From the NCBI GenBank assembly GCA_964035545.1, contig OZ037766.1, positions 24,296,126-24,360,125 of the forward strand: a DNA stretch of 64,000 bases. Reading direction: 5' to 3'. A program made the position numbers and the translations under genes. The first letter of the stretch is position 1; every line of letters starts with the position of its first letter. The DNA comes from Bugula neritina (lineage: Eukaryota; Animalia; Bryozoa). Below are positions 16,544 through 60,423 of the stretch, piece after piece. The notes beneath the pieces are model-generated. The model saw only the letters and a program-made list of their open reading frames with translations. It was not told the origin of the DNA and ran no database searches.

Positions 16544-16609
<66 letters not shown>

Positions 16610-16611
16610 AA

Positions 16612-24538: not shown

Positions 24539-25376
24539 CTACCCTGGTGCAGCTCTAGACTCCTTATACCTAGTATACTGATCTTTTATCTGGTCAACAA
24601 GAACTGTAGCATTGTGCAGCACTGGACTTGGGGTCAAATGTAATATGCCTTCTTTTATATTAGATAGCCCGAAACCATAAGAAGTTAATTTATTGTAAAA
24701 TCTTGTCTCCCACCCTCGGGCTGCCCGCAAGTACCTGTATACTTGTCTTGGTACGTAATAATACGTGTAGCCAACATAATCTTCATCTTTCTTTCCATAT
24801 GTAATGGGTGCTTGAGTGACAAGCTCCATTTCTAGTTGTGCTTCTACATTTAAATTATGCATTAACTGAACACATTTCTCCAATATAAATTCATATTATC
24901 ATGGTTTGTATTTACATGGAAAACTGCAGGCTAAAAGCTTGAAACAATTGCAAGCATTTTAGTCTGACTAAATATTTATTTCAAAGATTTATTATTAATT
25001 GGTTTTTCAGAAAGTAAAAAAAGATTATTTCATTTTTTTTTCAGAAAGTTAAAAAACTCATTTGCTAACATTTTGTTGTCTACTAGTTGACAGAAACAAT
25101 TTTGTGAATTCAATTATTAAGTAGTATGTGCTTGGAGTCATAAAATATTTCTTCTATGTTTGGACATATTCTATCTTAATGCAATAGACTATAAACATCT
25201 TACGTCTTCTCTTCCAACAGAGGTAAATGATGACTGGAATAGATAAGATGGAGAATACAATTAGAACCACAACCCAAGGTTTTATTTTCTCTGGAGGTTT
25301 AGGTTTTGGCGTCACTGTGACCGTACTTAGTTTGTAATCTAAAAACACACTTATGCTATGTATGTAAATATATATG

Positions 25377-25441
<65 letters not shown>

Positions 25442-25611
25442 CTGGAAAGCTCTTTGCGTTTGTTGAGGGAGGATAATTCGGTTTGTTTTTAAATTACATA
25501 TTTCTCATAGCTGCATAAGTTACATAAGTTACATAAATTATATCAGTACCAAATATAAATACTCTATTTTTCGAAATATTGAGTTCTTTTGATTCATTTT
25601 TTAATTATAAA

Positions 25612-25664
<53 letters not shown>

Positions 25665-25899
25665 AATATATCTTTACGAGCTAGCAATTTGATTATAAAT
25701 AGGTATACGAGAAACATTGTTATTTATTACTTTATTAGGTAAAGTAATTACACTGATATTTCGGGTACCACTGTACCCATCTTCATTGCTACTCTGAAGA
25801 TGGGTACAGTGGTACCCGAAATATCAGTGTAATTACTTTACCTAATAAAGTAATAAATAACAATGTTTCTCGTATACCTATTTATATATATATATATAT

Positions 25900-25998
<99 letters not shown>

Positions 25999-27814
25999 TC
26001 TACCTATCTATATATATCTTGCTTTTTATACTGTACTTAATATACTTCAAATAGAAGGTTTTCATACACACTTAAACATATTCAAATAAAATAATCTTAC
26101 CAACTAGCTACTTTTTCACAAAATTAGGTCATTTTCTTTAATTTATGTTGAATACAAAATAATAATATACATGAACACACCAGTAAGGAGACGTATTTGC
26201 CCCTGTATTCCCGCGTAGACCTCAACTCCAGATGTCTGCAAGCTCCAGCAGTGATATGGCAAAGGTGTACTCTTCACACAATATTCCTGCCCATTGGTGC
26301 ATACTGGGCCAACAACTTTCTTGTTTAGGTCCAACAATCTAAGCGCTTTATTCCAGAAATCAGCTACCAAATGCACGTTAGAACTTAAGGTAGTTATCGC
26401 TTTAGGATAATCAAATCTAGAATCACTCAGGTTGCCATCTACATAGCCCGTTTCTGTTGAACCAGCAATTTTTATATTTGAACTTATTCCTTCACTCGAC
26501 CAGGTGACTTGTGAAATGTAATGCTTATTCACAACGAGTAATTTTTTTTCAGTTGCAATGAAACTGGTGGGAAAGTTGAACCCTGATTTGATTACGGTAC
26601 TCAGTACACCGGAGTTCAAATTAACAGCTCTTATTGCGTTGTTGACTCTGTCGGTTATAAAAACTCTTTGTGGGTTTTCGCTATCAATGGCTACGTGCCA
26701 AGGGGAGGCGAGTCTCCCAGTTCCGATTTTACCTTCTTGGTATCCACCCCAACCACAAGTTCCAGCTATGGTAGTCACACCATTGTTTATTCTATTTAAG
26801 AGTTTTACACAGTGTTTCTTGCTTACAACGAAAACTACATGGGTGGAGTTTAATTGCTTGAATCCCGTAATATCCTGTTTAGAAACGGTCACAAGATTTG
26901 TAATTTTTTTTCCGTTTGTAGTCCCGAGATGAGAGTCAGTACTAAAGAGAAGACTTCTATCATTCTTATACCAGTCATCTTCCATGTGAAAAATTATTTT
27001 CTCTGTTTTTAAAAATATTTTGTTTTTCTTGAATATAAGGCTGAAAAAATAACACAATGTTATCTAAACACCATATTATATAAAAATAAAGTTATGAAAT
27101 AATTATTTGTAGTCTTGTGTGATGATTATATTGTAAAGTGAATTAAAAGTTTTCGGTTTCACAAGTCAAGTTTGAATGCTAATTAAGTGCTTTTAAATAT
27201 ATATGTATATATGCACCATCAGATTACCTTTCATACTGAGGATAGTTAATTACATTGTCTTCCTGCATTACCCTCGTCACCAGGAGCTAAAATACATTAC
27301 CATCTAGTATAGTTAGAAAATGTAGAAAATATCACTTCAATATGTTTGTTAAATATAATAATTGAAATTTTTAGAAAAAATTATTTTTATTACAAGGCAA
27401 AATCAAAATTTATTTCTATTGAAAAGAAAACAAAATAATGATATATTTTCATTTATTATATATTTTGATTGTTTGCTACAAATGCAGTTTGTTTGAGTAA
27501 TTCATTAAATATACAATGCATGAAATAAAAGGATGCCAACATAAATGAGTATGCTAAAAATTTGAATATTATTTTAAACCATATATAGAATATAAGTGAA
27601 ATAAAATCAAGTGTCTACAATATAATTGCTTGGGGAAGCAACTCTGCAGCCATTTCACTGATGTTATGTGTATAGAAAACAATATGCTACCAGATGTGGC
27701 CATTCATCACAAAATCTTAAGCAATTATGGCTGTTACAAAGTTCTAACAGTTATTACATTCCTAATTTAATAGACAAAACTAATAATTATAACAAAATTA
27801 TTTATTATGTGTTG

Positions 27815-27888
<74 letters not shown>

Positions 27889-28034
27889 CTTTAATAGTAC
27901 TTTTGCATGCCATTTGGATCATTTTATTTTTAAAACTTACCAATGTTATATTTATGCTTAAATAAATGTAAATGCGCAAATTAAGAAATTGTCTTACAGA
28001 TTTTACTCACGAAAATGACCAAACAGCGTTTCAT
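24539..28034 (-). CDS. NHL-like beta-propeller type I membrane protein, paralog 1 (Tyr-rich tail)
   Basis: Exons 28034-28011, 27286-27228, 27040-26181 (propeller), 25338-25204 (TM WVVVLIVFSILSIPVIIYLCW) and 24843-24539 (tail); intron phases 0/2/1/1 join in frame. Confidence 0.85.
25694..25886. repeat. Perfect inverted repeat (92-bp arms, 9-nt spacer) containing a hammerhead-like core
   Basis: 25694-25785 is the reverse complement of 25795-25886. CTGAAGA-T-GGGTAC-AGTG-GTACCC-GAAA-TATC at 25794-25825; flanked by (TA)n and (TTTA)n. Confidence 0.9.
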
Positions 28035-29698
28035 TCTTCTGCAAGTCTGCTTCTACTATGAATTATGTGACAGCTAGTGGTTCTCCACTCTCCTGCCACA
28101 AATTATAGTTTATTAAACATGTGCAGCAGAAGTACTATTTTTAGAGCAACTTAATCTCTATAAGTGATGGTTTGAGGTAACCCTGATGATGTCAGCCTTT
28201 TATATATTAACATAATGACTTTATCTTAATTCATTACCAACTCATGTAGCACTCTGCAAAGAAGAATCATTTCTAAAAGAATGGGCTGTGATTAGGGCAA
28301 CAAAACTTTACCAACCAATAATTTAGCAGCCGGAAAATTTAGCTATTCATATATTTATTAACATCTTAAGCAATGTAGAGATCAATTCTTATTCCAGAAC
28401 AAAGATTTCAAAGTCTTCTTAACTTTTATCGTTGGCCTAATTTTTGTAGTTGGAATTTAAAACTATGTATACATTTTTCTGTTCAGTACAGAAATTAATA
28501 GTTATTCTTCATAACTAATTTAAATTATTGGTCGAATTACTTGAAGGAGAGAAAATCTTGAATGCTAAATAAATGTTATTGTATCATAGCAAACATCCAT
28601 GCAATATATCATCTATAATTTATTAATTAGGCTTTTTAATATATAAACACTATTTTGATATTCTAACATAGTAACATCTTTTTTTAATGATATTTTATGA
28701 GTAATTTCATATAATATAATATGCTGCGTGGAGATAATAGAAATAGGCAATTGTTATTTGCACTAGATAGCTTTGAGTTAAATGTCTAACCAGAGTTTTC
28801 CAGTATAATCGATGTTCTTGCAAAGAGTTTCTATTCTCTCAACATCATCATTGTTATAATCTAAAAGACACTGAAGGATTTAAAATAAATAACGATAAAA
28901 TGTTTTTAAAATTTTTAATTTTGGAATGTCAAAAATGAACATAATTTTAATGGCTTTACCAGTTTATCAACTAAAATTTTTAAAACGTTTTGAAATGTAT
29001 TAAATAACTTACATTAGCATATTCAATTTTCTTATTATATATAAATAACTAAATTTAGTTTCATTTACTGCAATTAGAATATTTTTTGTTCAGTCACCTT
29101 CTGGTTGTTATAAATAGGTTAATCAACATAACTTCAGCAGACAGAGTAAACAGGTAAATAATATAATTTGTCAATTAGAAAGTTTTTTTACTTTAAATAA
29201 AAAACAAGGTAGAACCATGATTGATTAGTAGTAATTGTTGCCACATTTATTTTACCAAAAGAGGTTAAAATGCATTTTTTTTCCATTCCAAACAAACCAC
29301 ATGCATATATAGCTTTAATTAACTTTTTTAAACTGTTCAACTATTGAGTCATTGTTCTTACATATGCTTATTATTAAAACGACAAACAAACCACGAACTT
29401 TAGTTTTCTTGCTGTCTAGAAAATCTTAAATATTTTTGTTTGACTGACCAGCTTGAAACTTTTTGTAACGTACAGCAGTTGAATGTTGGTATAGACATTT
29501 ACATGAAAGGATCATTATCAAAATATAGAAAATCTTGAAATAAACTTTATAAAAGTAATTTTAGAAACATCCCCAAATAATCTTTTTGTACATTAACAAA
29601 ATTTTTACGAGAAGCTGTCCTGTTAATGAAGCTTGTTTCAATATTTGAAACGCATTTCAGGTTTATTTCAAATGCTGATTAGCTGTGCGTCATTAAAG

Positions 29699-32600
29699 AT
29701 GAAAAAGAAGACAACCCAAGCATACATGCTTACCAAAAGAATTAACAGCTTGTTACTGGTTCTACAGGTAAGTAAATGTATAGAAACTATTGTTTTAGAA
29801 GTCAAAGATTCTAACTTAATAGTTCATCTTGACTCTCAATGCCTTTGACAAACCCGAGAAAACATTTTTCATCAGAACAATGGTTTTATATTTTTATATT
29901 GCTGAAAACTATTTTAGCTTTTTACAATGGTTAGGTTTTTTTATAGTTACTCAATACAGATTAAGTTTTGCGCTAATTCACTGCTTTCCCACAGGTCACA
30001 TTATTTATTATTTTACATTGAAAGTTATTAAATTTTGTTGGGCACCTTTTTTGTTTCTTTCAAAAACCACAAATCATCAATGATTTCACATACCAACTCT
30101 ATACTTTGCTTTTATGTCAGAATTTTAAGTAATATATATAACAACTATATTATAAACATACTATTGTAGCAATCTGTCTTTAATCAGCTGTTGAGAAATT
30201 TTAGTTTTAATTAGTTTTTGCTACAATTTCCTTATTTCAATTAACCTTTAGCTAATTGCTTTAGTTTCCTACTAGCTCAGATATATAAAATAACTTCTTT
30301 CAGCTACTTAAATCTGTATTTGAGTTCCTCAATATGTGAGGCAATGCAATCTCTTCATGGTGAACTGTTAACAACTATAGACTCAAATTCTTTTTGAAAT
30401 TTTCAGATTCTTTATATACCTACACAGTTCATACTAAAAGTTTCATAACCATATTTTGCTGTTTAAAAAGTTATGCTTTACGCTGATGCTATGAATTTTT
30501 TCTTTATTGTTATAGCCATGACATTTTCTATTCTTAAGTTTTTAAATAAAATATTTGGTATACCAGTATTACTTTTGCTGCTACTACTGTATTCATTTCC
30601 CAAATGCAGATGTCCTCATTATCAAAATATTTTTGAATAATCCAAAGAAGTTACAGCTTTTAAGCTGTTGTTAATTGCTAATGACTTGAAAAATTGTGAG
30701 CATATCTTGATGTTTTATACTAAAATAGTGGCAAAAAACTATGATTATTATAACTTAGTGACAATATTTAACTTTTAAAAAAAAGTGTTTAAGACAAAAA
30801 ATCCTAAATTGTGAGTTATTTTATGCATTTGCGCTAGCAAAATTTTTATACAAGTTAGCTATTTACTTTTGCTGTGTTATACATTATAAGATTTGTATAA
30901 CTATTCATTATTATTATTTAAAATTTCAGATTTTGTCAATTTCAACGGTCAGAATGCAATCTGGTACAAGTAAATTATCAAGGTATTATAATAACTTTGG
31001 TTTTAGGTATAAAGCAATGAAATATGTGTGTACACGTGTGTTTGGGCAAATATATGCTCGTGTTTGCGTGTTTATATGTACATGGATAAAAATTTTATTT
31101 AACCCATAAAATTTTTTAAAGTTTTGAAATTTTTCAATGCAAAAGATACCAAATTCAACTTGTTTAATATTTTAGGGAAATATTTACTAAGCAAGGATCA
31201 TTTTTCAAAGCATTTGCAAATATACTTCACATAGAACGAGACTGGTACAAGAATGATGGCAGCATTATTTATAGCACTCAACACCGCGTGGCAACAACCA
31301 ATGGCAATAGAATTACCTCAACTCTGGTCCAATCAGCACATAGCTACTTCTCCGGATTTAAGCAAATTAACAAAACTCATTTGGTATTTTCAAAGGCAAA
31401 AAGTCATTGCGTAAAACTCATAAACAGAAAAAATAAAAAGACAGAAACATTGGCGGGTATTTGCGGAAGTCCCGGGATAAAAGATGGCACACTAGGAGTT
31501 GGCAAAATGCTGTTTCCTTACACAATTGACATAGATATAAAGAATCCAGAAAGGCTATTGATTCTTGATATTCAGCAAAATGCACTCAGGTTTTTGCTTT
31601 TCTACACAAAAGAGTTGGGTACTGTCATTCAATCCGGTTTTAATCTACCAATTTCTTTCGAGTGGACGGGTAGTGGTACATTGTTGGTAGCTAATCAACA
31701 TTATATCTCGGAGGTTCGGTGGGAGAATGACAGCTCTGTAACCAATGAGATGATTGTAGGATCCAACAGTTCTGGCAACAAGTACGGTATCTTCAGTAAT
31801 TCTAGATTCACATTTCCTTGTCACATAGAAAGAGCTGGAATAAACCAATATTATGTTACTGACTTTAACAATAAAGTTCTAAAATATGTGCAGTTAAGCA
31901 GTAAAAAAGTGGGGTATGTCTGTTTTGACTATGAAGGTATTTGTCACTCAGAAAGCTCAAAGCTTCAAGGTCTTCCAAAGGTCGTCTTAAAGGAAGGCGA
32001 TGATGTATACATTACATTTGATCGGTATATCTACAAGTACAAAACTAACCGTAAGTCAACTAAACATAATTAATTTTTCAAGTTGCTATAAAATGATTTT
32101 TTTTAAAACGTTGACTTTTTGGGTTAAACAAAACATGAACTTATTAAGTTAAACTATGTTGTTGATTATAATTTCTATGCAGATTATTACCTCAAGGAGA
32201 AGGTTCAGCTTTTGCCACCACCATCAGCTAAAACACCCTCTAAAATGAAGCCCAAACGTAAACAAGTTAGATTGCTTTCAAAGACTGCCTTATTGGTAAT
32301 TGGGTCTCTTGGTGGTTCAATGCTTTCCTTGCCAATTATTGCGATATGGTACTATGGATATTGGAAGAGCAGAGGTATGACTAATTGATTAAAAGTTGTG
32401 TGTTTACAAAAAAGACATATTGATAAACATAGTTTGGCAAATATTAAGCAACTAATAAAAACTATTGAATGGTTATTAACTCGCACAATGCTTTAAACAA
32501 TGACTCTAGTTTGTAGAATATTTAAATTTAGCTCAAATTTGATCCGTTTGATTAGATATACATTTATTTAATAGGCTGAAGTATTTTCTCAACTATTCCC

Positions 32601-32793
32601 TATAATTATTTCAATTCTATTGCGTGATATCTTATTAATGATTTTAATTTATATTGTTGAATGTCTTTTTTGTGTATTTTCTATCTTTTCAACAGATGAC
32701 ACCACCAGCTCTATTCCAACATCTGAAGCATACAAACAATATTACGAAGATGTCAAACCTGGTGACTATGAGAAGCTTATTACTCCTCTATAA
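29699..32793 (+). CDS. NHL-like beta-propeller type I membrane protein, paralog 2 (YEDV/YEKL tail)
   Basis: Exons 29699 (or ATG 29726)-29767, 30930-30982, 31176-32050, 32183-32374 (TM ..IIAIWYYGYW) and 32696-32793 (DDTTSSIPTSEAYKQYYEDVKPGDYEKLITPL*). Confidence 0.85.
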
Positions 32794-33654
32794 AGCTAAC
32801 TGCAAAAAATCACTATGCTGGATCATCTGTCCATAGAACTGCAATATGCAAGGAGTCTTACACAGTCTAAATATAGACAGCCATTGCTTAATGTGTCATC
32901 AGCATTTTATCAAGTCAAATTCTGATAAAATGTTTAATTTGTTATTCTTAATTTATTTTTATTTTTAGTCTAAAGAGAATAAATACAATAAAGAAAGCTA
33001 ATTTGTTTTTATCCCTTGTACACGTTTAAGATTCAAACTATACATTGATTTAAGTTATTTTTCGTTAATTCATAACAGATACTATAAATCTACTTAACTT
33101 TGTCAATCAAGTAAAATGTATTTATATTCAAGAAAAGCTGCTGGCAATACTGAGAAGGCAAAATTAGTTATACTTTCTTTGAACTGCAATTTAAAAGTTA
33201 TTTTATAGAAAATTATTAAACTGCAACTTTCTTTTAATAAAATACTATTATGGTTAAATAATTTTTTTAATGGTACGATAGATGTTTCACCAACTGTTGT
33301 TGCAATACACTAATCAAAGGTGACCAAAGTATAACCTAGTTGCTTAAATCAACAAATACTGAAAACACAATATTGTGTTTATAGTTCAGATAATATAATA
33401 AACACAAACATGATTTCAATAATATGCTAGTTTTTGATATATCACAACTTTCTTGTTCATAGTTTATATAGTTTCTAGCTGGTATAATGGAGTTTTCCTA
33501 TTTAGCATGCATTTACAACTATAATAATGTTATTTATTGATTATTATATTAGCTTGCATAAAGCAACTATCACATCGATAAATATAAAGAAAGCACATAT
33601 TGTGCTATGTTGCTAAATATACAATAAAAAATGAGTTTTAGGATTAAGAAAAAT

Positions 33655-36248
33655 CTAACATTCAACTTCAATTGCAACTTCATCTTCACAAAATAAATTA
33701 TCTTCATAAACAATCGTCATTGTGTGCTCATTGGGTGGATCATCAGGTATCTCTTCATAATGGTTCTCAATTTCACTGTACAGGGAATCACTCCTTTCCA
33801 GAATAGTGTGTCTTCTTTCAGTGATATTACCTTCACCAGATGTGAAAGATGTTTCTTGGGCTGATATACGGCAATTCGGTTGATTGATACTGGTTTGAAT
33901 TGAGCCTGATTGGTCTAATAGTGGATGCTTTCCTATAATATTAAGAATAGAATATTAAAAAATATTAAATTTATAGCAAATTTATTGGCATGATAAACAG
34001 GTTATATAATTCTAAACAGTTAAAGCAGGCTTTAATGGCAATTTGAGTTTTCTTGTTGCTGATCTAGTGTCTAGAAAATATAGAATAGCTTATGGCAATG
34101 TCTAAAAAATGGTCACAATTAAAAAGAACAGATATTTTGAAAATTATTTTCAAGAAAATTAAAAAAAAGAAAAAGTAAAACTAGGGGTGAAGATATAAAA
34201 AATAAAAAGAAGGAAAAATACTAAATGTATGCAAAATGTTCCAGAAAAATATTCAATTGATTTTTAGTTATGTAACCAACTTTATGCACTAAATATTTTT
34301 TTACCTTGATTCCTTAAATACCTGGATGCAAGAACAATAACAACAATAGAAATCAGTAACCCAGATGCAATTCCAATAGAAAGAGTAGTGAGTAGTTGGG
34401 GGTTGGCTGAATGGTATGATGGACTCGTAGTGTTCTGATTCAAAAATTTTGAAGAAGATTGTGAAGCAGCTGAACTAGAGTCGTAGTTTGATGTCGTAGA
34501 TTCAGTCTTTGAAAGGTCATTGGCAGTAATAACATGTAACCTGTTGACCCTGTGCTGCTTCTTTGTATTGTAAAACATTGGAGATGTAATCTGCTTTAAA
34601 GAAGATTGTCTTAAAGATGTTTGGGAATAACGGGATTGATTCAATGTCACTGTAAGTGATGGAGTCTTGCTCGAAGCTCTTATTGGTTGGTTGAGCATGG
34701 AGCTCGTGACAGCAGATGGTGATTTAGAGTTTAGCGGAGAAGATCTTGCGCTGCCAGGTGTATTTAAGGGAGAGACATGATTTGCTTTTTCTTTGTCAAC
34801 TGACAGCTTGGTGTCAAAACTTGAGTTTTGAAGTTCTGAGATATTATTTTGCAAAGCAGCATCTTCTAACTGTGAATCTAATATAAGGCCTAAAACATGT
34901 GTTGACAAAATATTGCAAAAATAATGATTAATTACTTGAATTTGCTGCTTTTGCATAATGGTATGAGTCCGTTCAACTATAATTAGTTTAAATTATGTGT
35001 TAATGTGCTAATGTGTTATATCTGCAAACTTTCATTTATGATTAAATTACAAAATTTGTATATTAAGCTTATGATTGGTAAATTACTTCTTAATGAACTA
35101 AATTTATGGACTTTAGTGAAAAGTGACTCGTTTATTCATTCTGAATTCTATAACCAATTAGTTACTTCAAATAACCTAAATAACTTAAAAATGTATCACC
35201 AACATAAATTCATAGAATAACTTTCAATTTTGTAAGTCATGTAAACTGTCTAAAATTGAACTAGGGCACTGCACCACACATAAATATGAGGTTTAATTTT
35301 ATGTTTACATGATACGAACCACTCAGCTGATAAATGTCACGCCACAGTCCTACATACACGTCATTCCTCACTTTGAGCACAGAGAGCGGAGAGTTTGGGA
35401 GTTTACTGCTAGTTGAGCAAGGTCTTTCACCGTAGATACAGACAGGACCAACTGTTTGCTCGTTGAAGTCTAGTAGTCTCAATACTTTGTTGAAATGATC
35501 AACTACCATGTACACACCTGGGCCCACCTGTTCAAGGTTGTTCGGGTAACCAAATTTGGACTCCTCAAAAGAGCCATCTCGATAGCCATTACGTAGTGAG
35601 CCAGCCACAATATGATTTGTCACAGAACCGTTACTCAACCATGCGACTTGTGAAATATAATTTTCATTTGCTACTAATAATTTGGTGCCAGCCCAGGCCA
35701 TTCCTGTTGGTCTTACAAAACCTGATTGGATGACAGTTCCTAGCTCTCCTGTATCCAGCTCTACAGACCTCAGGGCTGAATTATACTCATCGATCACTAA
35801 CAATCTGCTTTGGTTTGCCACATCAATTTCAATACTCTGAGGGTAATTCAAGCGACCAGTTCCCGGTTTGCCCTCTCTATACCCTTTTGAACCACAAGTT
35901 CCTGCAAAATCGTATGTGTTGTTGTTTTCTCTATTGAACGCTTTAATGCAGTGTTTATTTTGAAAGACTATAATGACATGAGTCGTGTTTATTTGTTTGA
36001 AACTTTTCATAGAGTTTGTTGAGTCAGTAAATAAAGTCGATGTAGTTTTCCCATCAGTTGTACGGATGCTATCCCAAGTATTAAGTATAATGTTCCCATT
36101 TTCTTTATAATGATCTATTTCCATATGAAATACAGCCCTTGGTGTGTTTAGAAACTGCTGGGAGCTATTGAATGAGGCACTGAAATATAATTATAAATAT
36201 TCTATATTTTGTATTCTATATAGCCTATAAAATTATGCATATATTTAG

Positions 36249-36313
<65 letters not shown>

Positions 36314-36534
36314 CACTCTCACCATGGTCACAAACTCAAGCTGCTAGCATTTTGCAATGCTCGTGACTCCTAGGTGACTCCTAGAGTCACTTGAGCACTC
36401 TGGCTTGAGTTTACACACCTTTTAAATATGCTTTAGTAAAACTATAAGTTTCTACTATTGCGAAGGTGTGGGCCATGGTACTCTGTTCTGTGCTGATGAG
36501 GGGACAAATCCCGAAACAGCTGCTGTCCACAGAT

Positions 36535-36632
<98 letters not shown>

Positions 36633-38567
36633 AAATGCAATAATCTAATTATTTACATAATTTTGCCAGTAGCTTTAGTAGAACTAATCTTGAGTATTTT
36701 TATCTGATAAGCTATCACTGGCAACACTGGGCGAACAAGGAAACATTTGTTTGCTAAAGGTAGGTGGAGTCCAAAGTTCAGTATTACGCAAACTAAACAC
36801 CCTGATGATAAAGTGCATCAACCTGATTGTCATTTTAACATAAGCTTAAGGGTAAAACTTGAAAATAAACTGTATTATATATACCCGAAGTTAATGATAG
36901 TTTAATTGACAGTAAATAGTAGTTTGAAGCCTTGAGTCTAAACTCTAGTGTATGGTCATGTGCAATGCAATATAGTACTTATTATATATACTTGAAATTA
37001 GGAGTATTCTTTTAACAACTTGTATTCATTTAAGTCATATATATTTTTTACTTCAATAATGCAATAGAATGTGTGCTAAATTATCAACATCCATGATATC
37101 TTATGATATCTTGGTAAAAATTTGAACGCTGATAGTGACTAGATAATTAAGTCCATTTGAAAAACATATGCATTACCTTGAAGGTTTTCCCTTGTTTGTA
37201 GCAGACTTTACAGATGCGCAAAGGTGTAAGAAAATCTGTAACAAAAATATTTTAGCATTTATTCATGGGCTGCCACATTAATTCTAAAAAATGCTCTTTG
37301 TATATTATATGGTTGAAAGCTATGCCAAAAAAAATCCCCAGTCATCTCAAACTCTTTGTACTCTCTTACAGTAATATAACTATATAATATGACACTAGAT
37401 TTTAAGTGCAAAGCAATATCAGCCACAGTAGCTCTAAAAACATCCCAACAATAAATAGCAACATCTAGCAAACTTTTTTAAAGATTAATTCTTAATATTT
37501 CCAAAACTAAAACAATTACCAACACTGATTGCATTACCAAATTTAATTTCACATATAGACTTCTATTTAAATTATTTTTGTAATTAAATTGTATTATTTT
37601 GACTAGACTTAGGCACTTAGACTTCGCATAATTCTTTATTTGTTCTTTTCAATAACTATATTACTTGTTTCTATATTTTATCAATGTTTTTTAGAGGAAG
37701 ATAAATAAACTACCTATAATAAACTTCATTATAGGCTAAATTTTTATGTTAGTAGTTGCATTAGGAATGATTATGAGCCGATATTTAATATAAAAAGTAC
37801 TTTATTTAAAATTAGATTTATCTATACAAACAATGTAAAAAGAGTCAAGAAAAACCCTAAAAACACCAGCCTTTCAACTGAAAAGCTTCTCTTTACCTTT
37901 ATCCCAGCACCTATAATATATGGGTCAGTAAAGCTTTAGTCTTTTTTACCCTGCTGTGTATTTAAAAGATATCTACAACCAATGCCTCAATTTTTTATGA
38001 TAATCAAATTAGACAGACATGAACTGGCAACTTATTTGATAGTGCAGTATTTTAGGATTAGTGGATATTATCAGCACATAATATAACCAGTGAAGAAAGG
38101 TGAAGGTGAAATGGCAGATCCTAGCCACAGGTTATAACAAACTACAATTATTTATCCACACACTAAAAAAGCTAATGGTGTTATTTAAATCTGTATGTCA
38201 AAGATTTTTATATCTGAAAAAAAAATTACCAGGGTTTAGCCTGAGACTTAGTTTGCGCCATGCAGTTAGAGCATTCACGGCAGACAGTTTTTTCACCATC
38301 TTGTTTATTATGTATTTAGCCGATCGCCTGCTATCGGTTTGCTTGAGCCAAGTCAACCCGTTTTAAATACTGCTGTCTCAACTATAGGTATAAGTTGTTT
38401 ACTAAGTTTTAGGCAACTATTTTGTTTTTGCTATCGTACACTGGCTGCTGGAAATATTTCATTTTTATAATTTCTAGATTCCAGATCTGTGGAATGAAAT
38501 GCCAATAATGTAACAAATGATAATAGCATACTGTACTTACAAGAAGAGTAGTTAGCAGTCCAGCCAT
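33655..38567 (-). CDS. NHL-like beta-propeller type I membrane protein, paralog 3 (long Ser/Thr stalk, ITIM+YEEI tail)
   Basis: Exons 38567-38541 (MAGLLTTLL), 37235-37177, 36179-35320, 34877-34305 (stalk plus TM) and 33932-33655 (..[13 protein letters not shown]..). Confidence 0.85.
36311..36537 (+). mobile_element. 5'-truncated copy of the hammerhead repeat inserted in (TA)n
   Basis: Reverse complement of about 16608-16834; long (TA)n on both sides. Confidence 0.85.
36487..36533 (+). ncRNA. Type I hammerhead ribozyme, canonical core
   Basis: Stem I TCTGTG/CACAGA; CTGATGA; stem II GGGA-CAAA-TCCC; GAAA; stem III ACAGC-T-GCTGT; GUC triplet with predicted cut after 36527. Confidence 0.92.
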
Positions 38568-39094: not shown

Positions 39095-42000
39095 TCATTC
39101 CTCTGTTTCCACCTCGGTATCGCACACTAAGTCTAAAACATATCCATCTCTCATTTCGTTTTCTTCAATAAAATTATCATTGATCTCTTCATAATGGTTT
39201 TCATCTTCACCATACAAGTAGCTGTTCATAGCTGAATTATTAGCACTTCTAGAACAAGCGCAGCATGCTAAAGGAAAGGTTTTCGTACAGCTGCCCTGTA
39301 ACATAAATAGACAGGAAATAAATCTATTAAATGTTAATTACTTACTCATGTCCTGCTTTACTTACAGCAACTGTCACTAGCTTATACTTACTGTAAAGTA
39401 ATTTTGCACTGGGATTCGAACCACAAACCTCTGGTTTGCAAGCAGGCGAGTTATAAGCAGTACACCACAAGGGCTGCTGAGTGAACTCAACACTACACAT
39501 ACATCCTTGCGCTACTAGCTTGTTTCACAGTAGGCTACTAAATATTTAAATGCTACAAAACCAATATTGTTCGTTGTTATGGCAACCCACTGACATCTAG
39601 AGTGAAAGTATAGTATCGATAATAATATTATGGTGTTTAGGTGTGCTTTTTCTGTTCATTACTTCGAAATGTTGATTAGAAGGGATTGGTGTCAAGTACT
39701 ATGATGTTGCACATATATACACGACAGCCTAGGCTTAACAAATAAGGTATAAAGGTAATATCTGGACTCAAAATCATCTGGTTTGGGAGAGAGCTAAAAA
39801 TTACTAGAATACGTAGTGTTGAGTTTACCCAGTAGCCCTTGCTTGCAAGCCAGAGGTCTGCGATTCGAATCCTAGTGAGACGAAAATTTTACAGATAATG
39901 AACTTGAAGAGTCATCAATTTAAGTCAATAGCAGATCCTCTGCAAAAACTTTTAATAGAAGGAAGCAGTTCTGAATAAATTAATACAAGACTATAGCTTT
40001 AACTGCGAGAGACCCATAAAAAAGAGGAATTATTTTAAAAGTGTCAATCTATCACAAGTCTATATATACCGCATAAGTAGACAAAACTGGTAGCCAGATT
40101 ATAGCTGTCTAGTTAGTTGTAGGAGCATGCGTTTGATAGAAATAGTATGGTTTAACTAAATTGCTATCCAGGGCTTAACATTAATCGGTATTTAAAGTTA
40201 CTCTTTTATAAAATAAAGTTACAACAAATAACACTTACAATAAAATTACTTACAATAATATGATAATAATACATAATATAAATATATAATATATTTATTA
40301 TAGTATTATTACTTACCTTATATTTGTCCAAGTAGCAAAGCACAATAGCAGTAACCAACATGGAGAGAAGAATTGTGGACACAGCTATGACAATAACTGT
40401 AACAGAAGGTCTTTTTTTATTAGAATAATAGGCAGTGCTAGCTATAGAATCTGTAGACTTTGTGGTTTGGATGCTGCGATTAGCCTTCCTTACAGACGAG
40501 GTGCTAAAATATTTAGTACTGCTGGTAGTCCGAATAGAAAGATTTACTTTTTTGGTATTAGAATAAAGCCGATCAGTTGTTCTAAGAGATGGAGGGTGGG
40601 TAATTCTTTTACTGCTAGAAATTCCTTTAATATCAACTGTGGGTTTTGAAGTTGTTGTACTCCAGTTCTTAGCAGTCGCTCTGAGTGCTGAAACTAAACC
40701 TGAAAGCAAATAAAAGCATTACTGCCAATTATGATATAGCTTATAAATCGATTTGAAATGCTTCAATTTAGAGAAGGCAAAATCGGAAAATGACCCCTAT
40801 TGACTAAAACATTTATTAGGTACGATGAGCTAACTAAAATTTTAACCTAATGATTATAAATCATTAATTTAAAAATGAAAATATCAAAACAAAGCAATAG
40901 CATTCTTTTTTTATCAGCATTCAGTATAGATTTTTTTCTTATAATTATTTTTGTTGCATTTGTTATATTATTATAGCTAGTGTGGCTATATTTTAAGTTA
41001 TAGATATATAAGTAGTTTCATAAAATAATTCATCCTTCATAAATAAATAAATTAATTGAAAAAAATGTTTAAGCATTTACCTTTTACTCTATAAATCCCA
41101 TCTCCCATCCCTATATAAAGGTCATCTTCTACTTTCAATACAGACAATGGGTGATGTGGGAGTTGGCTGCTCCTTTTACAAATATCCTCCTCATTAAAAC
41201 AAACGGGAACAACTGATTTTGATTCAAAATCCATGAGTCTGAGTAATCCGTTATAAAAATCACAAACAATGTACTTGTTGGCCAGTACCTTAATAATTTC
41301 TCTTGGATAGCCAAATGTTGCTAAATTAAAACTGCCATCTACGTAGCTATTCTTCTTAGCTCCAGCAACTTGAGTGTTGGTAACAGAACCATTGCTTAAC
41401 CATGTCACCTGAGAGATGTAATGCTCATTGGCTATTAATAGCTTGTTACCAAACCATGTCAGTCCTTTGGGAAAGTTGAAACCAGTTTTAATAACTGTAG
41501 ATAACTCCCCTGTCAGAAGATTTACTGATCGTAGTGCGTGGTTATTTTCATCAGCAATTAGTAGCTTGTTTGGGTCCCTAACATCTTTTTCTAGACATTG
41601 AGGAAAGTTTAGTCTTCCAGTGTTGACTCTACCATCAACAAGCCCTATGTGATGACACGTGCCAGCTAAAGTACGAATATCATTGTTCCTCCTGTTCAGT
41701 ATTTTGAGACAATGGAGATATTGAGCAATTATAACTACATGAGTTGTATTTATTTGCTTGAATCCACTTGATTCCAACAGAGAAATATTTAATAGGAGTG
41801 AAGCAGTTTTCCCATCAGTGGTTTGAAGATTGATATCTGTGCTAAACAAAATACTGCCGTCTGCCTTGTACAGATCCTGTTCCATGTGGTACACAGCATC
41901 AGACGAGGTATAGAATTGATCAACTTTGTTGATATTTACACTGCAAATATATGAAATACAAATAAAAATTTTGCAAGATAATTTACCTATACATAATGCA

Positions 42001-44466
42001 ATTTTAATGCAAATGGCTGTGACTATTTTATTTTCAATTTATAACAATACTTGTCTATTATAGAGTCTATTGTAAAAGCCAGTAAAGTCAATTGATGTAA
42101 ATTATATATTGTTTTATGCTATAGTTTAGCTTTTTATAATATATTCATGTAGTTTAAATATGTATAAAATTATATGCAGCTAACAATATAATTACATAAC
42201 AATATATTTTTATAAGTTCTAAATTTAGACGAAGAGAAATTTGCAGCATTAAAATAATATTGATTTGAAATTTTATTTGCAGAGCTTCTTAAATCAAGTA
42301 GAACTTTATATAGCAATTTTTAAAAGAAAAGTTTATGTCTTAATAGAACAAGCTAACAGTCATGTCATTTGTGTGTTATATTATACAATGCAAGCTAAGC
42401 TTTTCTCAACCATTGAAATAAAACAAAACTAATGTTTACAGTAAGTATTGCTTATTAGAAACATAGCACTACTATTACAGTTTCATCAGTTTTTGCATAT
42501 TTATATATTTTAATGTTAATATTTTACTATTTATATCACGTATACTCAGTTAATATCTATACTTTTGAAAATTCTCTAAGCCTCAGTACTTATATAACAG
42601 TTTAAAATTGGCTAGTATAATATCTAATTAGCATGCATTTTCATTAATTATGCATGGATTGTGGGTTTTCAGTATTCATGTTATGCCACAATTAATAAGA
42701 ATTGGTTCTGTTTAGCAGTTTTTCCATACACAGTGATAACATTGGAGTTAATTTGCAGTAGTTTTGTCTATATAAAGATTATTTGGCCATGTGCCAGTCA
42801 TAAAATAGATTATTCTCTACAGCTTTCTCCAATCATAGCTAAGTTCAAACCTCAAACCGTCTTGTATCTTGTACGCACTTGTCACACGCTTGGGTATATA
42901 GAGTTGGTATGCCAGCAATTTTCCCATAACGATATAATATTGATGAATCAAAACCCAAAACTCACAAACTTATTTCTACATCTCTTTTTGCTAAATTATT
43001 TGTAAAAAGGGCAAAATTTCATGACCCATTAAAATAACTCTTAAAGCAATCAGTGGTTGACAAATTTAGGATGATAATTAATAATTATAAGACGTATGAT
43101 CAAAATAATTTGAAAACAATTAAAATGTAATTACATGTATGTAAAATATAATATAAACCTTTTGTTTATGAAACTCAAATAAAGCTCAATTATTTTTTGC
43201 TTTTTATGACCCACGGAAAACATATCTGAGTATAAAGTTATCCTTAAACCCAAGTTAACATCTTTCACAAGAAAGAAACAATCTGTATTAGTATATGGTT
43301 TAGGATTAGACTGAATAGTTTACTAAATTTTAACCATTTGGTTTATTTATAAAAGCAGTGGTTGAAATCATGTTTTACTTACACTATTATATGCATTGTT
43401 CAAAGTAATGTCCGTTGCTTTAAGTAAGCTATCTATTATATCTACTATATTATTATATATAGAAAAACAGTAAAGTATGGTATTGCCATTAGGTCCAACT
43501 TGTAAAACAATGCAACTTACACTGTTAACAATGCATCAACAAAAATCTTATAAAAACAGAATCTTACCTTTGCTGCTCTACCGCAAGAGTGTGAAATTTG
43601 AAGGAAGCATATAAAAATATCTAAAATCAATAGATGTAAACATAGTAATAAGTAATAAGTAATAGTAATAAGCATTGCTTAAGGCTAAAAGCTATATCAT
43701 TTTATATAAAAATAAGTAGTCTTTATGCAATTAGATACATGTAGAACAACATATAGCAAGAAGGATAACTGTTTGTAGTCAGGTTAAAGAAAACGAATTT
43801 ATTCATTTCAAGTTTATAGTTGTAAATTGTTTAACAAATTTTATAAAAGTGGATTTGTAGTTTCACTTACGAAAATGATGAATTTCGCTTTCATTCCTTA
43901 TTTTTCACTTTCAGCTGTTTGTGCGATCTCAATAATAAAACTAACTGAAATCAAATTTGAGTTGCTGAAAGCCTAGCTCTGTTTATACAGATAAAATGCT
44001 ATCTATAAGTACCCCTAAGTCATGCATTCTTGTTATAGGCAGTATCTATACTTGTTTACCTCAGAAAGATATAATGCAATTCGATTTATCTTTGCTACTA
44101 GTATTGCATGTTATCAAGTGCAAAATCATGCTGTTATAGGTCATCCAGTTGTCCATTCATTGGGCCCATTAGGCATTATCACATTTTTTACCGTTATCTA
44201 AGTTATTTTGATAATAATAAGAATCGACCTCAGCTCTTTCTTACTTTGAGTTGGCCATTTTACATTAAACAAATTATCGCTCTTCAAGACAATTAATATA
44301 ACTTCAGCATACCCTGAGTTATTCATTGCGTAACACAATGGCAATCATTTACTATTCAAATAGGATTGTACTCTGGCACTTTTTTTATTTAATTATTGGA
44401 GCTTTTGTAAAAGATTTTCAGGTGAGATGACAATTATATTAACTTAAATGCTAGCTTACCGTACAT
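39095..44466 (-). CDS. NHL-like beta-propeller type I membrane protein, paralog 4 (Ser/Thr stalk, ENHYEEI tail)
   Basis: Exons 43620-43568, 41940-41081, 40699-40317 (stalk plus TM) and 39295-39095. The 5' exons 44466-44460 and 44094-44060 (MYAKINRIALYLSE) are tentative. Confidence 0.8.
39405..39497 (-). mobile_element. tRNA-derived SINE, family B
   Basis: ctgggattcgaacc..ttgcaagc..tacaccac..aactcaacactac, homologous to 15243-15340. Confidence 0.7.
39812..39885 (+). mobile_element. tRNA-derived SINE, family B (internally deleted)
   Basis: gtagtgttgagtttacccag..gcttgcaagccagaggtc..ttcgaatcc. Confidence 0.65.
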
Positions 44467-46296
44467 CACTTGCACAGTTGACACAGTTGAGGCATTTTGC
44501 AAACAGAAACAGTGGCAGCTATTCAAGTCATATATAATACATTAAATACAAGTACTTCTCAACTAACTGGTGCTTTATTCAGTTTTAATTTAATCACTTT
44601 TTCGATAAGAATATTTAATAATCATCATCACCTAATGAAAAAAACATATTATTGTATATAATAACACAGTAAGTTAAATCATTATTGTATATGCAACTCA
44701 CATGCAAGGTATCATTCTCTTAATTACAGTAGGTAGTAATTTTCATTTATGATCTTGATATTAAGGAGACACAGCTCATAAAATTGTTAAGTACTACTTA
44801 TGGATAATATATGGTTTATCTTTGACATTATTCTTTATATAGTAAAAACCAATTATGAAGTGTTGTTTATGTTTTGAATACATAAGATTACAACAAAGGA
44901 TAGAACTGTTGTTTTTCCATTCTTCAGGGCATCTAGCTAGCATATTGTACATATTTAGCAGCTTGGTCGTTTTATTACTAACCACGAATTCAACCTAGCA
45001 ATTAACAATCAGAGTATATGATATTTCTCTGATGTGTTGGTGTTTCATATTTTTGCTAGTTTATTCTGCACACTGTACGTAGAACTTTAGCTAGTAATGT
45101 TGTGCATATCTAAGTTTATTTATAGTTATTTTACTAATTATCATGTATTAATAAATAGCTAGTGCCTGGCAATTACATTATTAATAAATTATTCTATAAT
45201 TAATAAGTCAAGGCTAAGCCTACTTAATAAAAGTGTGAGTTTAAAATAATGCAATGTTATATAAGCAAAGTGGCTTTCAATCTTCTGCAGTCTATACTCT
45301 CTACCAAGTCCTTCATCCACTAAAGTCACTATTTTAAGTAACAATGACATGCGTGCATTAGAGTAAATGTAAATGTAAAAATGATAAATAAGCTGACTCC
45401 AAAGATTGTGCAGTGATTGGGATATTGTGGAATTGGCTTTGGTGTGTTTTGGTGTAATTCTTGCTGCATTATCTTTACTTAGAAAATTACTATTGATGAT
45501 ACGTACCATATATATTTAATTTGTAGACATATCCTTTTCGGGTTATGATATTATTTAAGATTATTTTAATCAATTTTATAAAAATAACTTTATTGTAATC
45601 ATATGCAATTATCCTAAGTTCAAAAAACTGCTATTTAAAACAACTTATATGTATTTCAGAGTTTACTCGGAGAACTAAAATAATCCAGCCACTCAATGAT
45701 AATATATTTTTAGAAATTTAAAAATGCTTATATTTAGCTGTAAACCAAGCAGTAAAAGATGTTAGATAAACAGATCCAAGTTCTAGAATCTGTTGATGTT
45801 TTTGCTGTGCATTATAATTATTTTCTCAATGTTACACTTTCTAGCTTTAAACTTCTTTGTCTCATGAACAAACTCGACTGCTTTTCCTGTCTTGCAATAA
45901 TAAGTTCTATCATATGGTTATTATGTAATTTATACTTTCAGGTTGTGACATTCTTGTTAAAAATTATTTAGATACATCACAAAATATTTAATTGATTATT
46001 TTACAGACTAATTATGATTTAGAAAAATAAATAATTTTTAGGCCCTCTTTCACAGCTAAAACGCTAAGCATTAAAATTTATTATCTGTCAATAATTTATG
46101 CCTTAACATCAAGAACTTCAAAAGACTATTTTTCACTACTTTGTTTATTAACATGTATTGTGTAAATAGCAGTCAACAAAAATAATAACATAGTTATGTA
46201 AATTGTGTTTCAAGTTCGAGTAGTGACTTTTGTATAATATTATTATTTGTAGGAAACGAGAAATGTGAAAAATATCTGTTCTTCATCAAGAAGGAA

Positions 46297-49200
46297 ATGC
46301 AAAGTCTGTTATTTATTGTAAGTTTGTATTTGAACTATTATTAAGACTTGTTAAGTTTTATGTCAACAAAAATTAATTGTTTGCATTATTATGAGAATTG
46401 ATGATCTTTCAACTTTTTTCAAATCTCTAAGCACTGAGCTATATAGTCTCGCTCATATAATTATATTCCATCTTTCTTTAGTCTCCATCTGCTTTAAGAG
46501 ATAATTATATAAAATGGAGTTCAACACGCTAAAACTTAGTCTGCTTAATAACCCAACAGACTAACATATCCAACATTTTTCCCCAATATATTATTGAGAA
46601 TGACATATTTTTGGTTCTTCATCAATAAAAAGTGTAGCCATAAAGAGCTTAGAGTGACTGAAATCATTTCTATAAGTCAATTTTGTTGAACAAAATTTAA
46701 ATAACTAGTGCAAACAACTTAAATTTGAATAATGTCTGCTATTATAGAAACTTAGCAACTCAAAAACAGCTTTATCAGTTAAGCATTTTATTATGAACTT
46801 ATTTTTAACTTCAGCTTATTTTAAATTTGGAATTCTTTATATTTCAACTTCTCTTCACCAATCAACAAGATTTAAAGCCTTATACTGCTTGCTGTAGAAC
46901 TGCTGTAACAGAATAATACTATTTCAGAGAAGATGCTCAATTTTTCTATATATAGTCATTGAATCACTATGCTGTGCAGCTTAAACTTTGTAAAGTAACA
47001 TATATAGTTTGCTGCAAAACTTTGTAATGTATACCATTTTAGATCATCTTCTTTGATACAGCATGGGTGGTGCCTGCATCAGTTCCAAAAGCAAGGTAAG
47101 GGATTTCAGTATTATATATAAGAGTACATAGTTGATAAATGAAATATTGCAAGGCCTACAAATAAAATAATAGGCTTATAATATTGACTGCAAATTGTAC
47201 ATTTTAGCTTTGAGATATATTGATTTTATAAGGCAATATTTATCAAACAATCTGCTAACTATAATGAACTGCTGCTTCAGTTGACCAAAGTAGTATATTT
47301 TTATACCAGGTTTCAAGAGTGAGAATTTGTTTGTAAAGTCCCAACTATGCAGCTACTCTCAAATTAAAATTAACTTGCTTTTTAATCTAAGACTCTAAAT
47401 GGCAGTTTACTTAAAAATTCAAACCAAGCCTGCTGCAGAATATATAACATAATACACGTATTGACTGCTTACCAGCAATGGTACAATGTTTTCACAATAG
47501 GGGTAACGGGCACAACGGTCATAGGGGTACAAAAAGCCGGTCAAATTGTGAGAGAACTTATTGACTTGGAGTTGTGATTTTTTAATGAAAAGGTATTGAT
47601 ATAATGATTTAGCCATTGTAGTTTCAACACTTGCAGAGCATACATGTTGAAAAGGCGAGTCAAAAACTAATTTTACCTACTTTTTGTAAATTTTTTAAGA
47701 TGTCATTAAAGCTTTATAACTTTTTACACTCAAAGGTAACAAGCCTAGTTCTTACTGATATTGTTGCCATTGCTTGTCTCTACATTGCTTAACTAGTATG
47801 ATAGCAAACTCGGAATAAATTTTCTTTGAGCCACATTTATTTTCAACTTGGCCACCCGGGGCACAATAAGCCACGTGACCATTGCACCCTGTCTGCTCTA
47901 ATATAAATCTTTAAAAGTGTTCAATACTAAATTTTATTTGTTACAGCCAAAAATAATAAGCGTGCAGCTTTCAGCAGCAAACTGTTACCATGCTTTTGGG
48001 ACAAAAAACTTAAAAATACGTAATAAGCATTTTGTAGACTTGCTGTTGTTTTTAGATTAACTCTCACAGATTTTGAGCTGTTCCATCGAACACCTAGATT
48101 GGTTAACGGCATAGAAGTAGATCTATACAAAGATGACAGCAGCATTGTTTTCAGTACACAAGACTATGTTCGCAGTACCAACGGGATTAGATATGATCAA
48201 CTCTTGGTGCTGAGGCAAAGTTTTATGTCAGGATTAAAGCATATCAATAAAACTAGTTTAATTATTTTAGCATCCGATTTTCACTGCATCAAAATATTAA
48301 ACAGAGAAGATCTAAGTTCACGTACTTTAGCGGGAACCTGCAAGAGTATCGGGTCTGCAAATGGGGTGGTTGGTGTTGGTAAACTGTTTTGGCCATCTGG
48401 TTTGGTAATGGATATTCGGGATTCTAACAAGTTGCTGGTTGCTGATAACGGAGGTAATTCTATCCGATCAGTTATAATCAGTACAGGTGAGCTAGGAACT
48501 GTTATTAAGTCTGGTTTCAACAAGCCAAGAGAGATGGCATGGTTAGGTCAATCACTATTAGTCCTTAATTATCATTACATCTCGCAAATCAACTGGTTTC
48601 CCAATGGCTCTATTGTTAATACAAGGATAGCTGGTTCAGTCGTTTCTGGCTATGCAGATGGTAGTCTTAATGGAGCTAGATTTACTTATCCTCTCGCAAT
48701 ACTTCCTTTGAAACAAAAGCAGTTTCTAATCACTGACTTCAGTAACAGGAAGCTCAGATTGTTAGACATGGAGAGAAAATTAATTGTCCCGATTTGTCAC
48801 AACGGAGAGATACCTTGTACAAAAAGTAGTCCGCAACCTGATTTACCAACAGCTCTTTTACAAACTGGGAGACACATTTACATGGGCACCGTTCATAAAA
48901 TCTACAGATATAAATTCAATGGTAAGTACATTCCAAAATTTTTTTATTTCATTTCACTTTTTGCCAACTTTGACCAGTATGTCATTTTACCAATAGCGGA
49001 TATATTCTGTTTTGCACAGCAGTGCAATTTAAGATGCCATTGCAAACAGTATTAATAAATTAAATAGGTCAATAACATAAATTTTTTGAACATTTTAGCT
49101 CTAAGTTCCGCTCCTAACTTTTTATGATAAAATGCTTGCTGCAAAGTAAAGTAATAAACAGAATACTAAATTGCAATTCTGCTCCTTGCGTGATATTTTA

Positions 49201-50502
49201 AGTTATCGTAGTAAATTGAGAGTAAAACAGAATTATAGTTTAGTTTTTTTTAATGCTCAAGTCAATCTGTCAATAACATAGGCATGGATAGTACATGTAT
49301 ATAAAATAGTATTGACTTGTAATTTTGATGAGATTTAACACTGAGTTATATGCAGGTTAGATATAGCTAGTACATTGTTTTAAAGGAACTCATTGTTATA
49401 ACTACTATAATTAAGTTTTATATAGAATATAATATAATGTAATATTATTCCTATGTACATGTTATTATAGCTTTAGTCCTAATCTGTTAATACGTTTTAG
49501 TTATATGAAAATATTTTCTGAATTTTATTAATTACAACCCAAACAATGAGTGTAAATTATTTTTTCATGCAATGCCTAACTATCTTTAATTAAACTCAAA
49601 GCAGTTTTTTTAAGCACAACATTTATTTATTTTTAGTTTTGAGATAAAAATTGTAGTTAGGAGTTTACCCACCTGTCCCGGGGTGTAATGGTTAGCACAC
49701 TTGCTTGCAGGCCGGAGGTTTTGGGTTCGAATCCCAGTCGGGCAAAGTTTTCATGAGCTATTTTGGTCTTTAGTGAAATTTAGTAGCACTCTGAAGGAGT
49801 TAAGTGGCCAGGGGAGCCTGAAAACTGAAAGAGTAGTAGAGAGGCCAGTAGAGTTCTTGAGAATTGGGTGGGGTGTAGTGTTGAGTTTACCCAGCTGTCC
49901 CGTATTGTAATAGTTAGCACACTTGCTAGCAAGCCGGAGGTCTTAAGTTTTCATAAAACTATTATACTGTATTTTTGAACTTTAAATATATAGCATCATT
50001 TCATGCTCTATTAAAAATATACATTGTGACATTTATTTCAGATACTTTAAGCGTGCTCTCAAAGTTACCAGCATCAACACAGCCTGTAGCTAAAAGTAAA
50101 CTCATTGGAATTGGAATAGTAATTGGCATAGCATTTTCTACATCTATTATAACAGCTTGGAAATTTGGCTATTGGGATCGAAAAGGTAAAAATTAATATT
50201 GTCAGTAAATAGCATGTTTGGCAACAAGTAATTTTCCACCTATTGTAATGTAAACCTTCATTGAGAATGCAGACGGGTAAAAGTTTTATAATGGGCTACA
50301 TGTTTAAATGAATTTTGTTTTATATAATTATTTCCAAGTGTTTTGCAAGCATGCGTGGTGGTTACACATATAAATATATGGTCCTAATTTAGAAGTAGAA
50401 ACATTAAAGAAATCTGAGAAACCAAAGAAAAGAAAGAAAAGAAAGAAAACTCCTGTAACAGATGAAGCCAAGAAAAATACTGAGAATGAAACTGTAGAAT
50501 AA
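46297..50502 (+). CDS. NHL-like beta-propeller type I membrane protein, paralog 5 (polybasic, Tyr-free distal tail)
   Basis: Exons 46297-46317 (MQSLLFI), 47043-47095, 48056-48921, 50042-50185 (TM ..IITAWKFGYW) and 50393-50502 (EVETLKKSEKPKKRKKRKKTPV..*). Confidence 0.82.
49652..49945 (+). mobile_element. Two tandem tRNA-derived SINE family B copies (49652-49746 full head; 49873-49945 truncated)
   Basis: GGTGTAATGGTTAGCAC D-arm and GGTTCGAATCC B box, with the same 5' leader as the other copies. Confidence 0.75.

Positions 50503-51465: not shown

Positions 51466-60423
<8,958 letters not shown>

Follow-up and report, generated by a model that had tools for sequence, protein, structure and literature searches.

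The window analysed here, a 64,000-nt stretch of Bugula neritina DNA from contig OZ037766.1, contains a cluster of five related genes, G1 to G5 (24539-50502), which are predicted to encode surface receptors with a beta-propeller ectodomain. Five long open reading frames lie where an earlier reading of the bare sequence (the original prediction) had placed a group of paralogues built on one gene plan, and this plan could be modelled, with defined intron phases, for all five of them. The exon models were predicted from genomic DNA; joined models were used for frame checks, and searches were run exon by exon. A search for RNA runs covering the five genes returned none, and the single DNA run (X1) shows no splice joints. 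Each gene was modelled with five exons and GT-AG introns and shows no internal stop codon. The common plan comprises an ATG exon of 21-69 nt (phase 0), an exon of 53 or 59 nt (phase 0/2), a propeller exon (phase 2/1) of 860, 875, 860, 860 and 866 nt in G1 to G5, respectively, an exon for a stalk and a transmembrane (TM) segment, and a tail exon. The modelled stalks span 18-166 aa, close to the range of about 15 to about 170 aa initially proposed.

G1 (28034-24539, minus strand; 460 aa) starts with a predicted ATG exon for the beginning of the signal peptide (28011..28034), followed by a 59-nt exon for the remaining signal (27228..27286), whose donor site is conserved in the orthologue L038. 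Its 860-nt propeller exon (26181..27040; orthologue P0158) leads into a predicted exon for a short stalk of 21 aa and the TM segment (25204..25338) and a tail exon (24539..24843), for which the choice of acceptor is less certain and which encodes 100 aa with 12 tyrosines, devoid of immunoreceptor tyrosine-based inhibition or activation motifs (ITIMs or ITAMs). G2 (29699-32793, plus strand; 428 aa) comprises a predicted ATG and signal exon (29699..29767), a 53-nt exon with splice sites conserved in L040 (30930..30982), an 875-nt propeller exon (31176..32050; orthologue P0024/L040) and predicted exons for a 34-aa stalk with the TM segment (32183..32374) and for a tail containing YEDV and YEKL at a spacing of four residues (32696..32793). 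In G3 (38567-33655, minus strand; 602 aa), the predicted signal exons (38541..38567, with the ATG, and 37177..37235, 59 nt) precede an 860-nt propeller exon, modelled as 24 strands in six blades (35320..36179; orthologue P0001/L031), an exon for a long Ser/Thr-rich stalk of 166 aa and the TM segment (34305..34889), and a tail exon with SLYSEI, which conforms to the ITIM consensus, and YEEI, both of them kept in the sister lineage (33655..33932). G4 (43894-39095, minus strand; 506 aa) has predicted signal exons at 43871..43894 (ATG) and 43568..43620 (53 nt), an 860-nt propeller exon (41081..41940; orthologue P0008/L041), a predicted exon with a phase-0 donor for a Ser/Thr-rich stalk of 101 aa and the TM segment (40317..40699), and a predicted tail exon with a Cys-rich juxtamembrane stretch and an ENHYEEI motif in common with G3 (39095..39295). 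Finally, G5 (46297-50502, plus strand; 397 aa) consists of predicted signal exons at 46297..46317 (ATG) and 47043..47095 (53 nt), an 866-nt propeller exon (48056..48921) and predicted exons for a short 18-aa stalk with the TM segment (50042..50185) and for a Lys-rich tail without tyrosine (50393..50502).

Several comparisons bear on these exon borders. In each of the 30 best paralogues, position -55/-58 is likewise occupied by a phase-2 AG, and the homologous glycine (G|GT) by a phase-1 GT. Splice sites are conserved in the sister-lineage orthologues, and the same intron borders recur in remoter homologues found in marine biofilm samples. Moreover, a public contig (SRR4125604) joins the 860-nt propeller exon of a paralogue on contig C7 to small upstream exons and to downstream exons. 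It maps onto this paralogue in seven pieces, one of which corresponds exactly to the 860-nt exon, and thus represents a spliced product. Because paralogues, sister-lineage orthologues, biofilm homologues and the spliced paralogue contig agree, the exon borders of the window genes are not due to chance. All five predicted models show a signal-like core, a single TM segment and a tail in frame. G1 to G5 are thus predicted to be intact genes for type I membrane receptors.

The five ectodomains share four cysteines (positions 77, 95, 247 and 254 in G3 numbering), whose conservation suggests two disulphide bonds (77-95 and 247-254), as well as a (Q/H)(I/L)NxT sequon in blade 2 and the motif TVIx(S/T)GF. 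These features bear out the original description of the ectodomains, whereas the AGS..GY.DG and RF.YP motifs that it also listed are degenerate in G2 and G4. An AlphaFold2 model of the G3 propeller, obtained at high confidence (predicted local distance difference test 96.6, predicted template modelling score 0.92), contains 24 strands, which can be read as six blades with an N-terminal strand closing the ring. A profile built on G1-G5 detected the NHL domains of SOQ1 (E 5e-19) and NHLRC2 (E 4e-14), followed by Thin, TRIM71 and Brat. Foldseek ranked SOQ1 (TM-score 0.77), Bacteroides NHL proteins, NHLRC2 (0.74) and the teneurin NHL domain (about 0.7) highest, at 13-15% identity, and the structure-atlas matches were bacterial NHL/TEN_NHL clusters (TM-score 0.81-0.86). 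The Pfam NHL family matched the propeller only faintly (E 0.057), and a Pfam scan of propeller, stalks and Cys modules gave nothing above the cut-off, in keeping with the original decision not to assign the genes to a named family. Model, fold comparison and profile thus agree with the NHL-type propeller originally proposed, and the ectodomain can be described as a predicted six-bladed NHL-repeat beta-propeller. In NHL proteins, the top surface is built from the b-c and d-a loops and has a role in ligand binding (PMC4015489). Judged from the strand order of the model, the chain end and the conserved sequons at positions 64 and 183 would lie on the bottom face, so that the top face would point away from the membrane. 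The propeller exon is intron-free, and the atlas models closest to it belong to bacterial NHL proteins; these matches are no evidence of horizontal transfer.

The best sequence and fold matches, NHLRC2 and plant SOQ1, have in common with the window receptors the six-bladed NHL propeller and its G..GY.DG....F..P loops. However, identity amounts to only about 14%, and the window receptors have no thioredoxin-like domain; instead, their propeller, with its four conserved cysteines, would be extracellular on a type I membrane stalk, and the family comprises over 130 copies.

YEEI is a classic ligand of Src-family SH2 domains. The pattern YE-x-(I/L/V), which was chosen post hoc, occurs four times in the tails (twice in G2 and once each in G3 and G4), compared with an expected number of 0.38, and short-spaced YxxI/L pairs are found in G1-G3. 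Three of the tails (G2, G3 and G4) therewith look like phosphotyrosine docking sites. The tails mostly differ, as initially noted, although those of G3 and G4 share an LY.{4}ENHYEEI-like motif and no pairing of activating and inhibitory tails is apparent. No other match to the G3 tail was found in the genome. Using published definitions (PMC9546547), with the ITAM taken as Yxx[I/L]x6-9Yxx[I/L], we found no ITAM in the five tails and one ITIM consensus, that of G3; shuffled tails gave an expectation of 0.92. None of the five predicted models has a charged residue within its TM segment. In run X1, which derives from other DNA, seven single-nucleotide polymorphisms (SNPs) are listed for the G3 tail exon (33733-33841); they cause four amino-acid changes, none of which affects the tyrosine motifs.

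The window genes are old and, with respect to their propellers, conserved. Their ectodomains are 37-51% identical to each other, and the best paralogue in their own genome, among 33 compared, reaches 56%. In a quick tree, they lie on long branches and do not form a clade, on which grounds a recent local tandem origin of the cluster was rejected. By contrast, G1-G4 each have an orthologue with 91-93% identity in other Bugula-like samples, with the next best match at no more than 57%, while introns diverge by about 0.12-0.28 between the sister lineages. The ratio of nonsynonymous to synonymous substitution rates (dN/dS) of the propeller is 0.17 for G1 (92% identity to P0158, dS 0.21), 0.13 for G2 (93% to P0024/L040), 0.18 for G3 (93% to P0001/L031) and 0.20 for G4 (91% over 160 codons to P0008/L041). 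The propellers of G1-G4 are therefore under purifying selection, a result that the original prediction had itself named as evidence against its proposal. The stalks evolve at a dN/dS of 0.42-0.73 between lineages (0.61 for G3), and the G3 tail exon at 0.34. A search for an orthologue of G5 returned none on record. No positive selection was detected among the old single genes, whose synonymous sites are saturated, so that this result is uninformative. The partial list of SNPs from the one other individual in run X1 contains 10 in the G2 propeller exon, with 3 amino-acid changes. In the same run, the region 35325-36200, containing the G3 propeller exon, has no contig match at 85% likeness, with flanks covered about 100-fold, possibly as an artefact of filtering; this gap may reflect a divergent allele or a deletion, or it may mean nothing.

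The five genes represent a small part of a much larger family. Searches of the 216-Mb genome detected at least 139 loci with G3 as the query and at least 131 loci with the profile (E < 1e-8), both counts being lower bounds. Family members form clusters on the contigs C2 (24-28 Mb and 32.9-33.3 Mb), C7 (13.3-14.7 Mb) and C8 (7.6-8.0 Mb). In many close paralogues, small Cys-module exons follow the propeller exon. None of these modules matched the window when mapped against it, and the window genes therefore constitute a head-stalk-TM-tail subtype. More divergent tandem subfamilies with one-exon propellers, 20-36% identical to G3, are located in C8 (7.65-8.03 Mb, about 35 copies) and C2 (24.67-24.85 Mb, about 11 copies). 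A separate clade of animal homologues from marine biofilm metagenomes (L033-L037, L044 and L045) shows 36-42% identity and the same intron positions, indicating that the family reaches beyond the Bugula species complex. A further search for related loci in metagenomes gave no match. In the literature searched, which covered few subscription papers, there was no description of such a family of NHL-propeller surface receptors. To judge from these searches, the family is undescribed; it numbers over 130 copies, with a minimum of 131-139 loci in a bryozoan of the Bugula type.

A different mode of evolution is seen in two young clades identified among the 30 paralogues that best match G1-G5. Clade A (11 genes) is located in C2 at 32.94-33.28 Mb (L002-L010), with two members elsewhere, and clade B (10 genes) in C7 at 13.7-14.2 Mb (L015, L017, L020, L021, L023, L026, L028 and L029), again with two elsewhere. 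Within their cores, the genes are 80-88% identical, with pairwise dN/dS values of 0.6-1.4. Codon site models strongly favoured positive selection in both clades, with likelihood ratio statistics of 223 (A) and 142 (B) for M2a versus M1a and of 218 and 138 for M8 versus M8a, and they placed 9.8% of the sites in clade A at a dN/dS of 7.8 and 9.0% of those in clade B at 6.7. Of the 20 selected sites per clade (posterior > 0.9), 17 in clade A and 18 in clade B, together 35 of 40, map to the top-face loops (Fisher p 1.5e-6 and 8e-8), compared with one and none, respectively, in the bottom loops. Eleven of these sites are common to both clades (p 1e-9, or 4e-5 when top-face sites alone are counted), and selected sites contain more Y/W/F and R/K than the remaining top-loop positions. 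The signal persists when each third of the exon is analysed on a separate tree, and also in tighter cores. In the sister lineage, the clade-A genes lack a clear one-to-one partner: identities there reach 85-87%, just as they do between paralogues, a sign of turnover or rapid change.

At the 29 selected positions, identity among the window genes drops to 16.6%, as opposed to 44-45% elsewhere. Nevertheless, their orthologues change no more at these positions than at others (10/103 versus 68/912, p 0.43), and the top face of the window propellers shows no excess change. Each window gene therefore has its own, now fixed, face. Thus, the variable recognition face initially envisaged for the cluster finds support at the level of the family, in the young clades, whereas in the window genes it is fixed between lineages. 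The family as a whole combines many tandem copies, turnover and positive selection on one face, but the five window genes individually do not.

Taken together, we think it rather probable that G1-G5 are old members, each with a fixed specificity, of a large, germline-encoded family of bryozoan surface recognition receptors shaped by birth-and-death evolution. Each receptor would carry a single NHL propeller of six blades at the end of a glycosylated stalk, with the top face, going by the strand order, turned outward to bind an external ligand. New duplicates would diversify this face under positive selection, while older copies would settle on distinct faces maintained by purifying selection. 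G2, G3 and G4, and perhaps G1, probably transmit signals by means of Src-type phosphorylation of YE-x-(I/L/V) and subsequent docking of SH2 proteins, as their tail motifs suggest. By contrast, G5, whose tail is basic and free of tyrosine, probably functions without signalling, in adhesion or capture or as a decoy. The ligands may be microbial or other non-self molecules. FREPs and similar proteins are expanded innate receptor families of invertebrates, and the present family resembles these and the TLR and SRCR families in its tandem expansion but differs from them in fold. The points in common are an expansion specific to the lineage, birth and death of copies and diversified ligand-binding faces (PMC10279657, PMC10855680, on TLR and SRCR proteins). 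It is tempting to go one step further and propose recognition at two speeds, with about 30 top-face residues of the young clades caught up in an arms race, directed against microbes or serving fusion and rejection, and old members retaining fixed specificities and the SH2-docking tails that would supply the signalling, an idea that we advance tentatively and would not yet bet on.

Several points weigh against our interpretation. The step from a diversifying binding face to an immune function is one that we infer, and positive selection is also found in gamete-recognition and chemosensory families. The codon site models were our own implementation, in which branch lengths were only scaled, and the paralogue sets carry a signal of recombination (pairwise homoplasy index, p 0.005-0.01), which can inflate tests of this kind. 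In addition, the genes of clades A and B continue into small Cys-module exons, so their function may differ from that of the window genes, and G5 is without an orthologue for the comparison of selection.

Among the alternatives, a non-immune repertoire, consisting of receptors for settlement cues, symbionts, gametes or cell addresses, the latter in the manner of teneurin-mediated adhesion, survives best, although we regard it as unlikely. One-to-one orthologues and variable stalk lengths would be in keeping with a fixed code for adhesion or sensing, the NHL propellers of teneurins mediate cell matching, and face-specific positive selection also occurs in sperm-egg and chemosensory proteins. 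However, when about 10% of the sites show a dN/dS of 7-8 and copies turn over between sister lineages, host-parasite conflict is the more typical setting, and tails of the SH2-docking type would rather fit phagocytic or immune receptors. The similarity to teneurins lies in an extracellular NHL propeller that belongs to a membrane protein and, in teneurins, acts in cell-cell recognition. Yet, teneurins are type II proteins, conserved giants present in few copies and equipped with EGF, YD-shell and toxin-like domains, whereas in the family described here, which is expanded and diversifying, the head consists of the propeller alone. The window models, with their type I plan and 397-602 aa, do not fit a type II topology with EGF repeats and a YD shell.

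An allorecognition locus controlling colony fusion and rejection through polymorphic homophilic binders, as with the Alr genes of Hydractinia, was one of the two proposals made for the cluster, and we now consider it improbable. In its favour, Bugula is a colonial animal, and one face of the propeller is hypervariable in the young clades. Like the Alr genes, the family comprises tandem type I receptors of a colonial invertebrate with a shared ectodomain plan and diverse, tyrosine-motif-bearing tails (PMC9546547). Two studies also place the teneurin NHL propeller in homophilic recognition (PMC5851990, PMC11058771). On the other hand, Alr proteins have immunoglobulin (Ig) and fibronectin type III folds and, in many cases, canonical ITAMs, none of which occurs in the tails of G1-G5. 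Furthermore, Alr1 and Alr2 show extreme allelic polymorphism, whereas G1-G4 are constrained, without a top-face excess, and the SNPs in the partial list for the G2 propeller exon in the one other DNA sample change few amino acids. The variation of the young clades, for its part, lies between paralogues and not between alleles. The window locus is the conserved end of the family and hence not an allorecognition hot spot. If a role in an arms race or in allorecognition is to be sought, the best candidates are clades A and B and not the genes of the window. The B. neritina genome paper reported only weak Alr1-like similarities as leads to allorecognition (PMC7576161).

The other proposal, a set of paired activating and inhibitory immune receptors, appears still harder to maintain, and we give it very little credence. 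Like the vertebrate paired receptors (KIR, LILR, PILR and Siglec), the window genes encode clustered type I receptors with differing tails, and both the short-spaced YxxI/L pairs of G1-G3 and the conservation of the G3 ITIM consensus in the sister lineage would fit such a system. However, paired receptors are defined by highly similar ectodomains and opposite signalling (10.1101/2024.04.30.591854). G1-G5 show neither, given their divergent, non-monophyletic ectodomains, the absence of ITAMs, a number of ITIMs expected by chance and TM segments without charged residues. Lastly, that these genes are neutral duplicates of housekeeping or enzymatic NHL proteins of the NHLRC2 type is hardly conceivable: NHLRC2 and SOQ1 are indeed the closest solved structures, but the low identity, the signal peptide, TM segment and tails and, above all, the copy number and the positive selection confined to one face largely refute this idea.

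The remainder of the window contains unrelated features. To the left of the cluster, two long Thr/Ala/Pro-rich, mucin-like exons with TTQAPA-type repeats (2913-8077, minus strand; frames of 829 and 596 aa) each end in a short stretch free of repeats, which on visual inspection is SEA-like but has no Pfam match. A multi-exon gene at about 17236-22166 (plus strand), with a coiled-coil-like N-terminal frame and a C-terminal tRNA-binding domain (PF01588, E 4e-10), is probably the housekeeping gene AIMP1/p43. The right-hand neighbour (about 57868-58454, plus strand) comprises exons of an AMP-binding, acyl-CoA synthetase-like enzyme (PF00501, E 0.001). Intronic tRNA-like repeats of the short interspersed element type, with a B-box resembling GGTTCGAATCC, were seen at 39395-39500, 39800-39880, 49660-49950 and 15169-15414, and the segment at about 36430-36530 resembles that at about 16650-16770 (within 16607-17003).

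Expanded families of positively selected surface receptors are of a known kind, but an NHL propeller as the variable head is new. Recognition receptors are not known to have been described in the bryozoan phylum. If our interpretation is correct, this family would be the first molecular candidate for cell-surface non-self recognition in bryozoans, using an NHL propeller in place of Ig, lectin or leucine-rich repeat folds, and it would add this domain to the short list of folds that have been turned into diversified surface receptors of animals. With about 30 variable top-face positions that can be listed, non-self recognition in bryozoans becomes directly testable.

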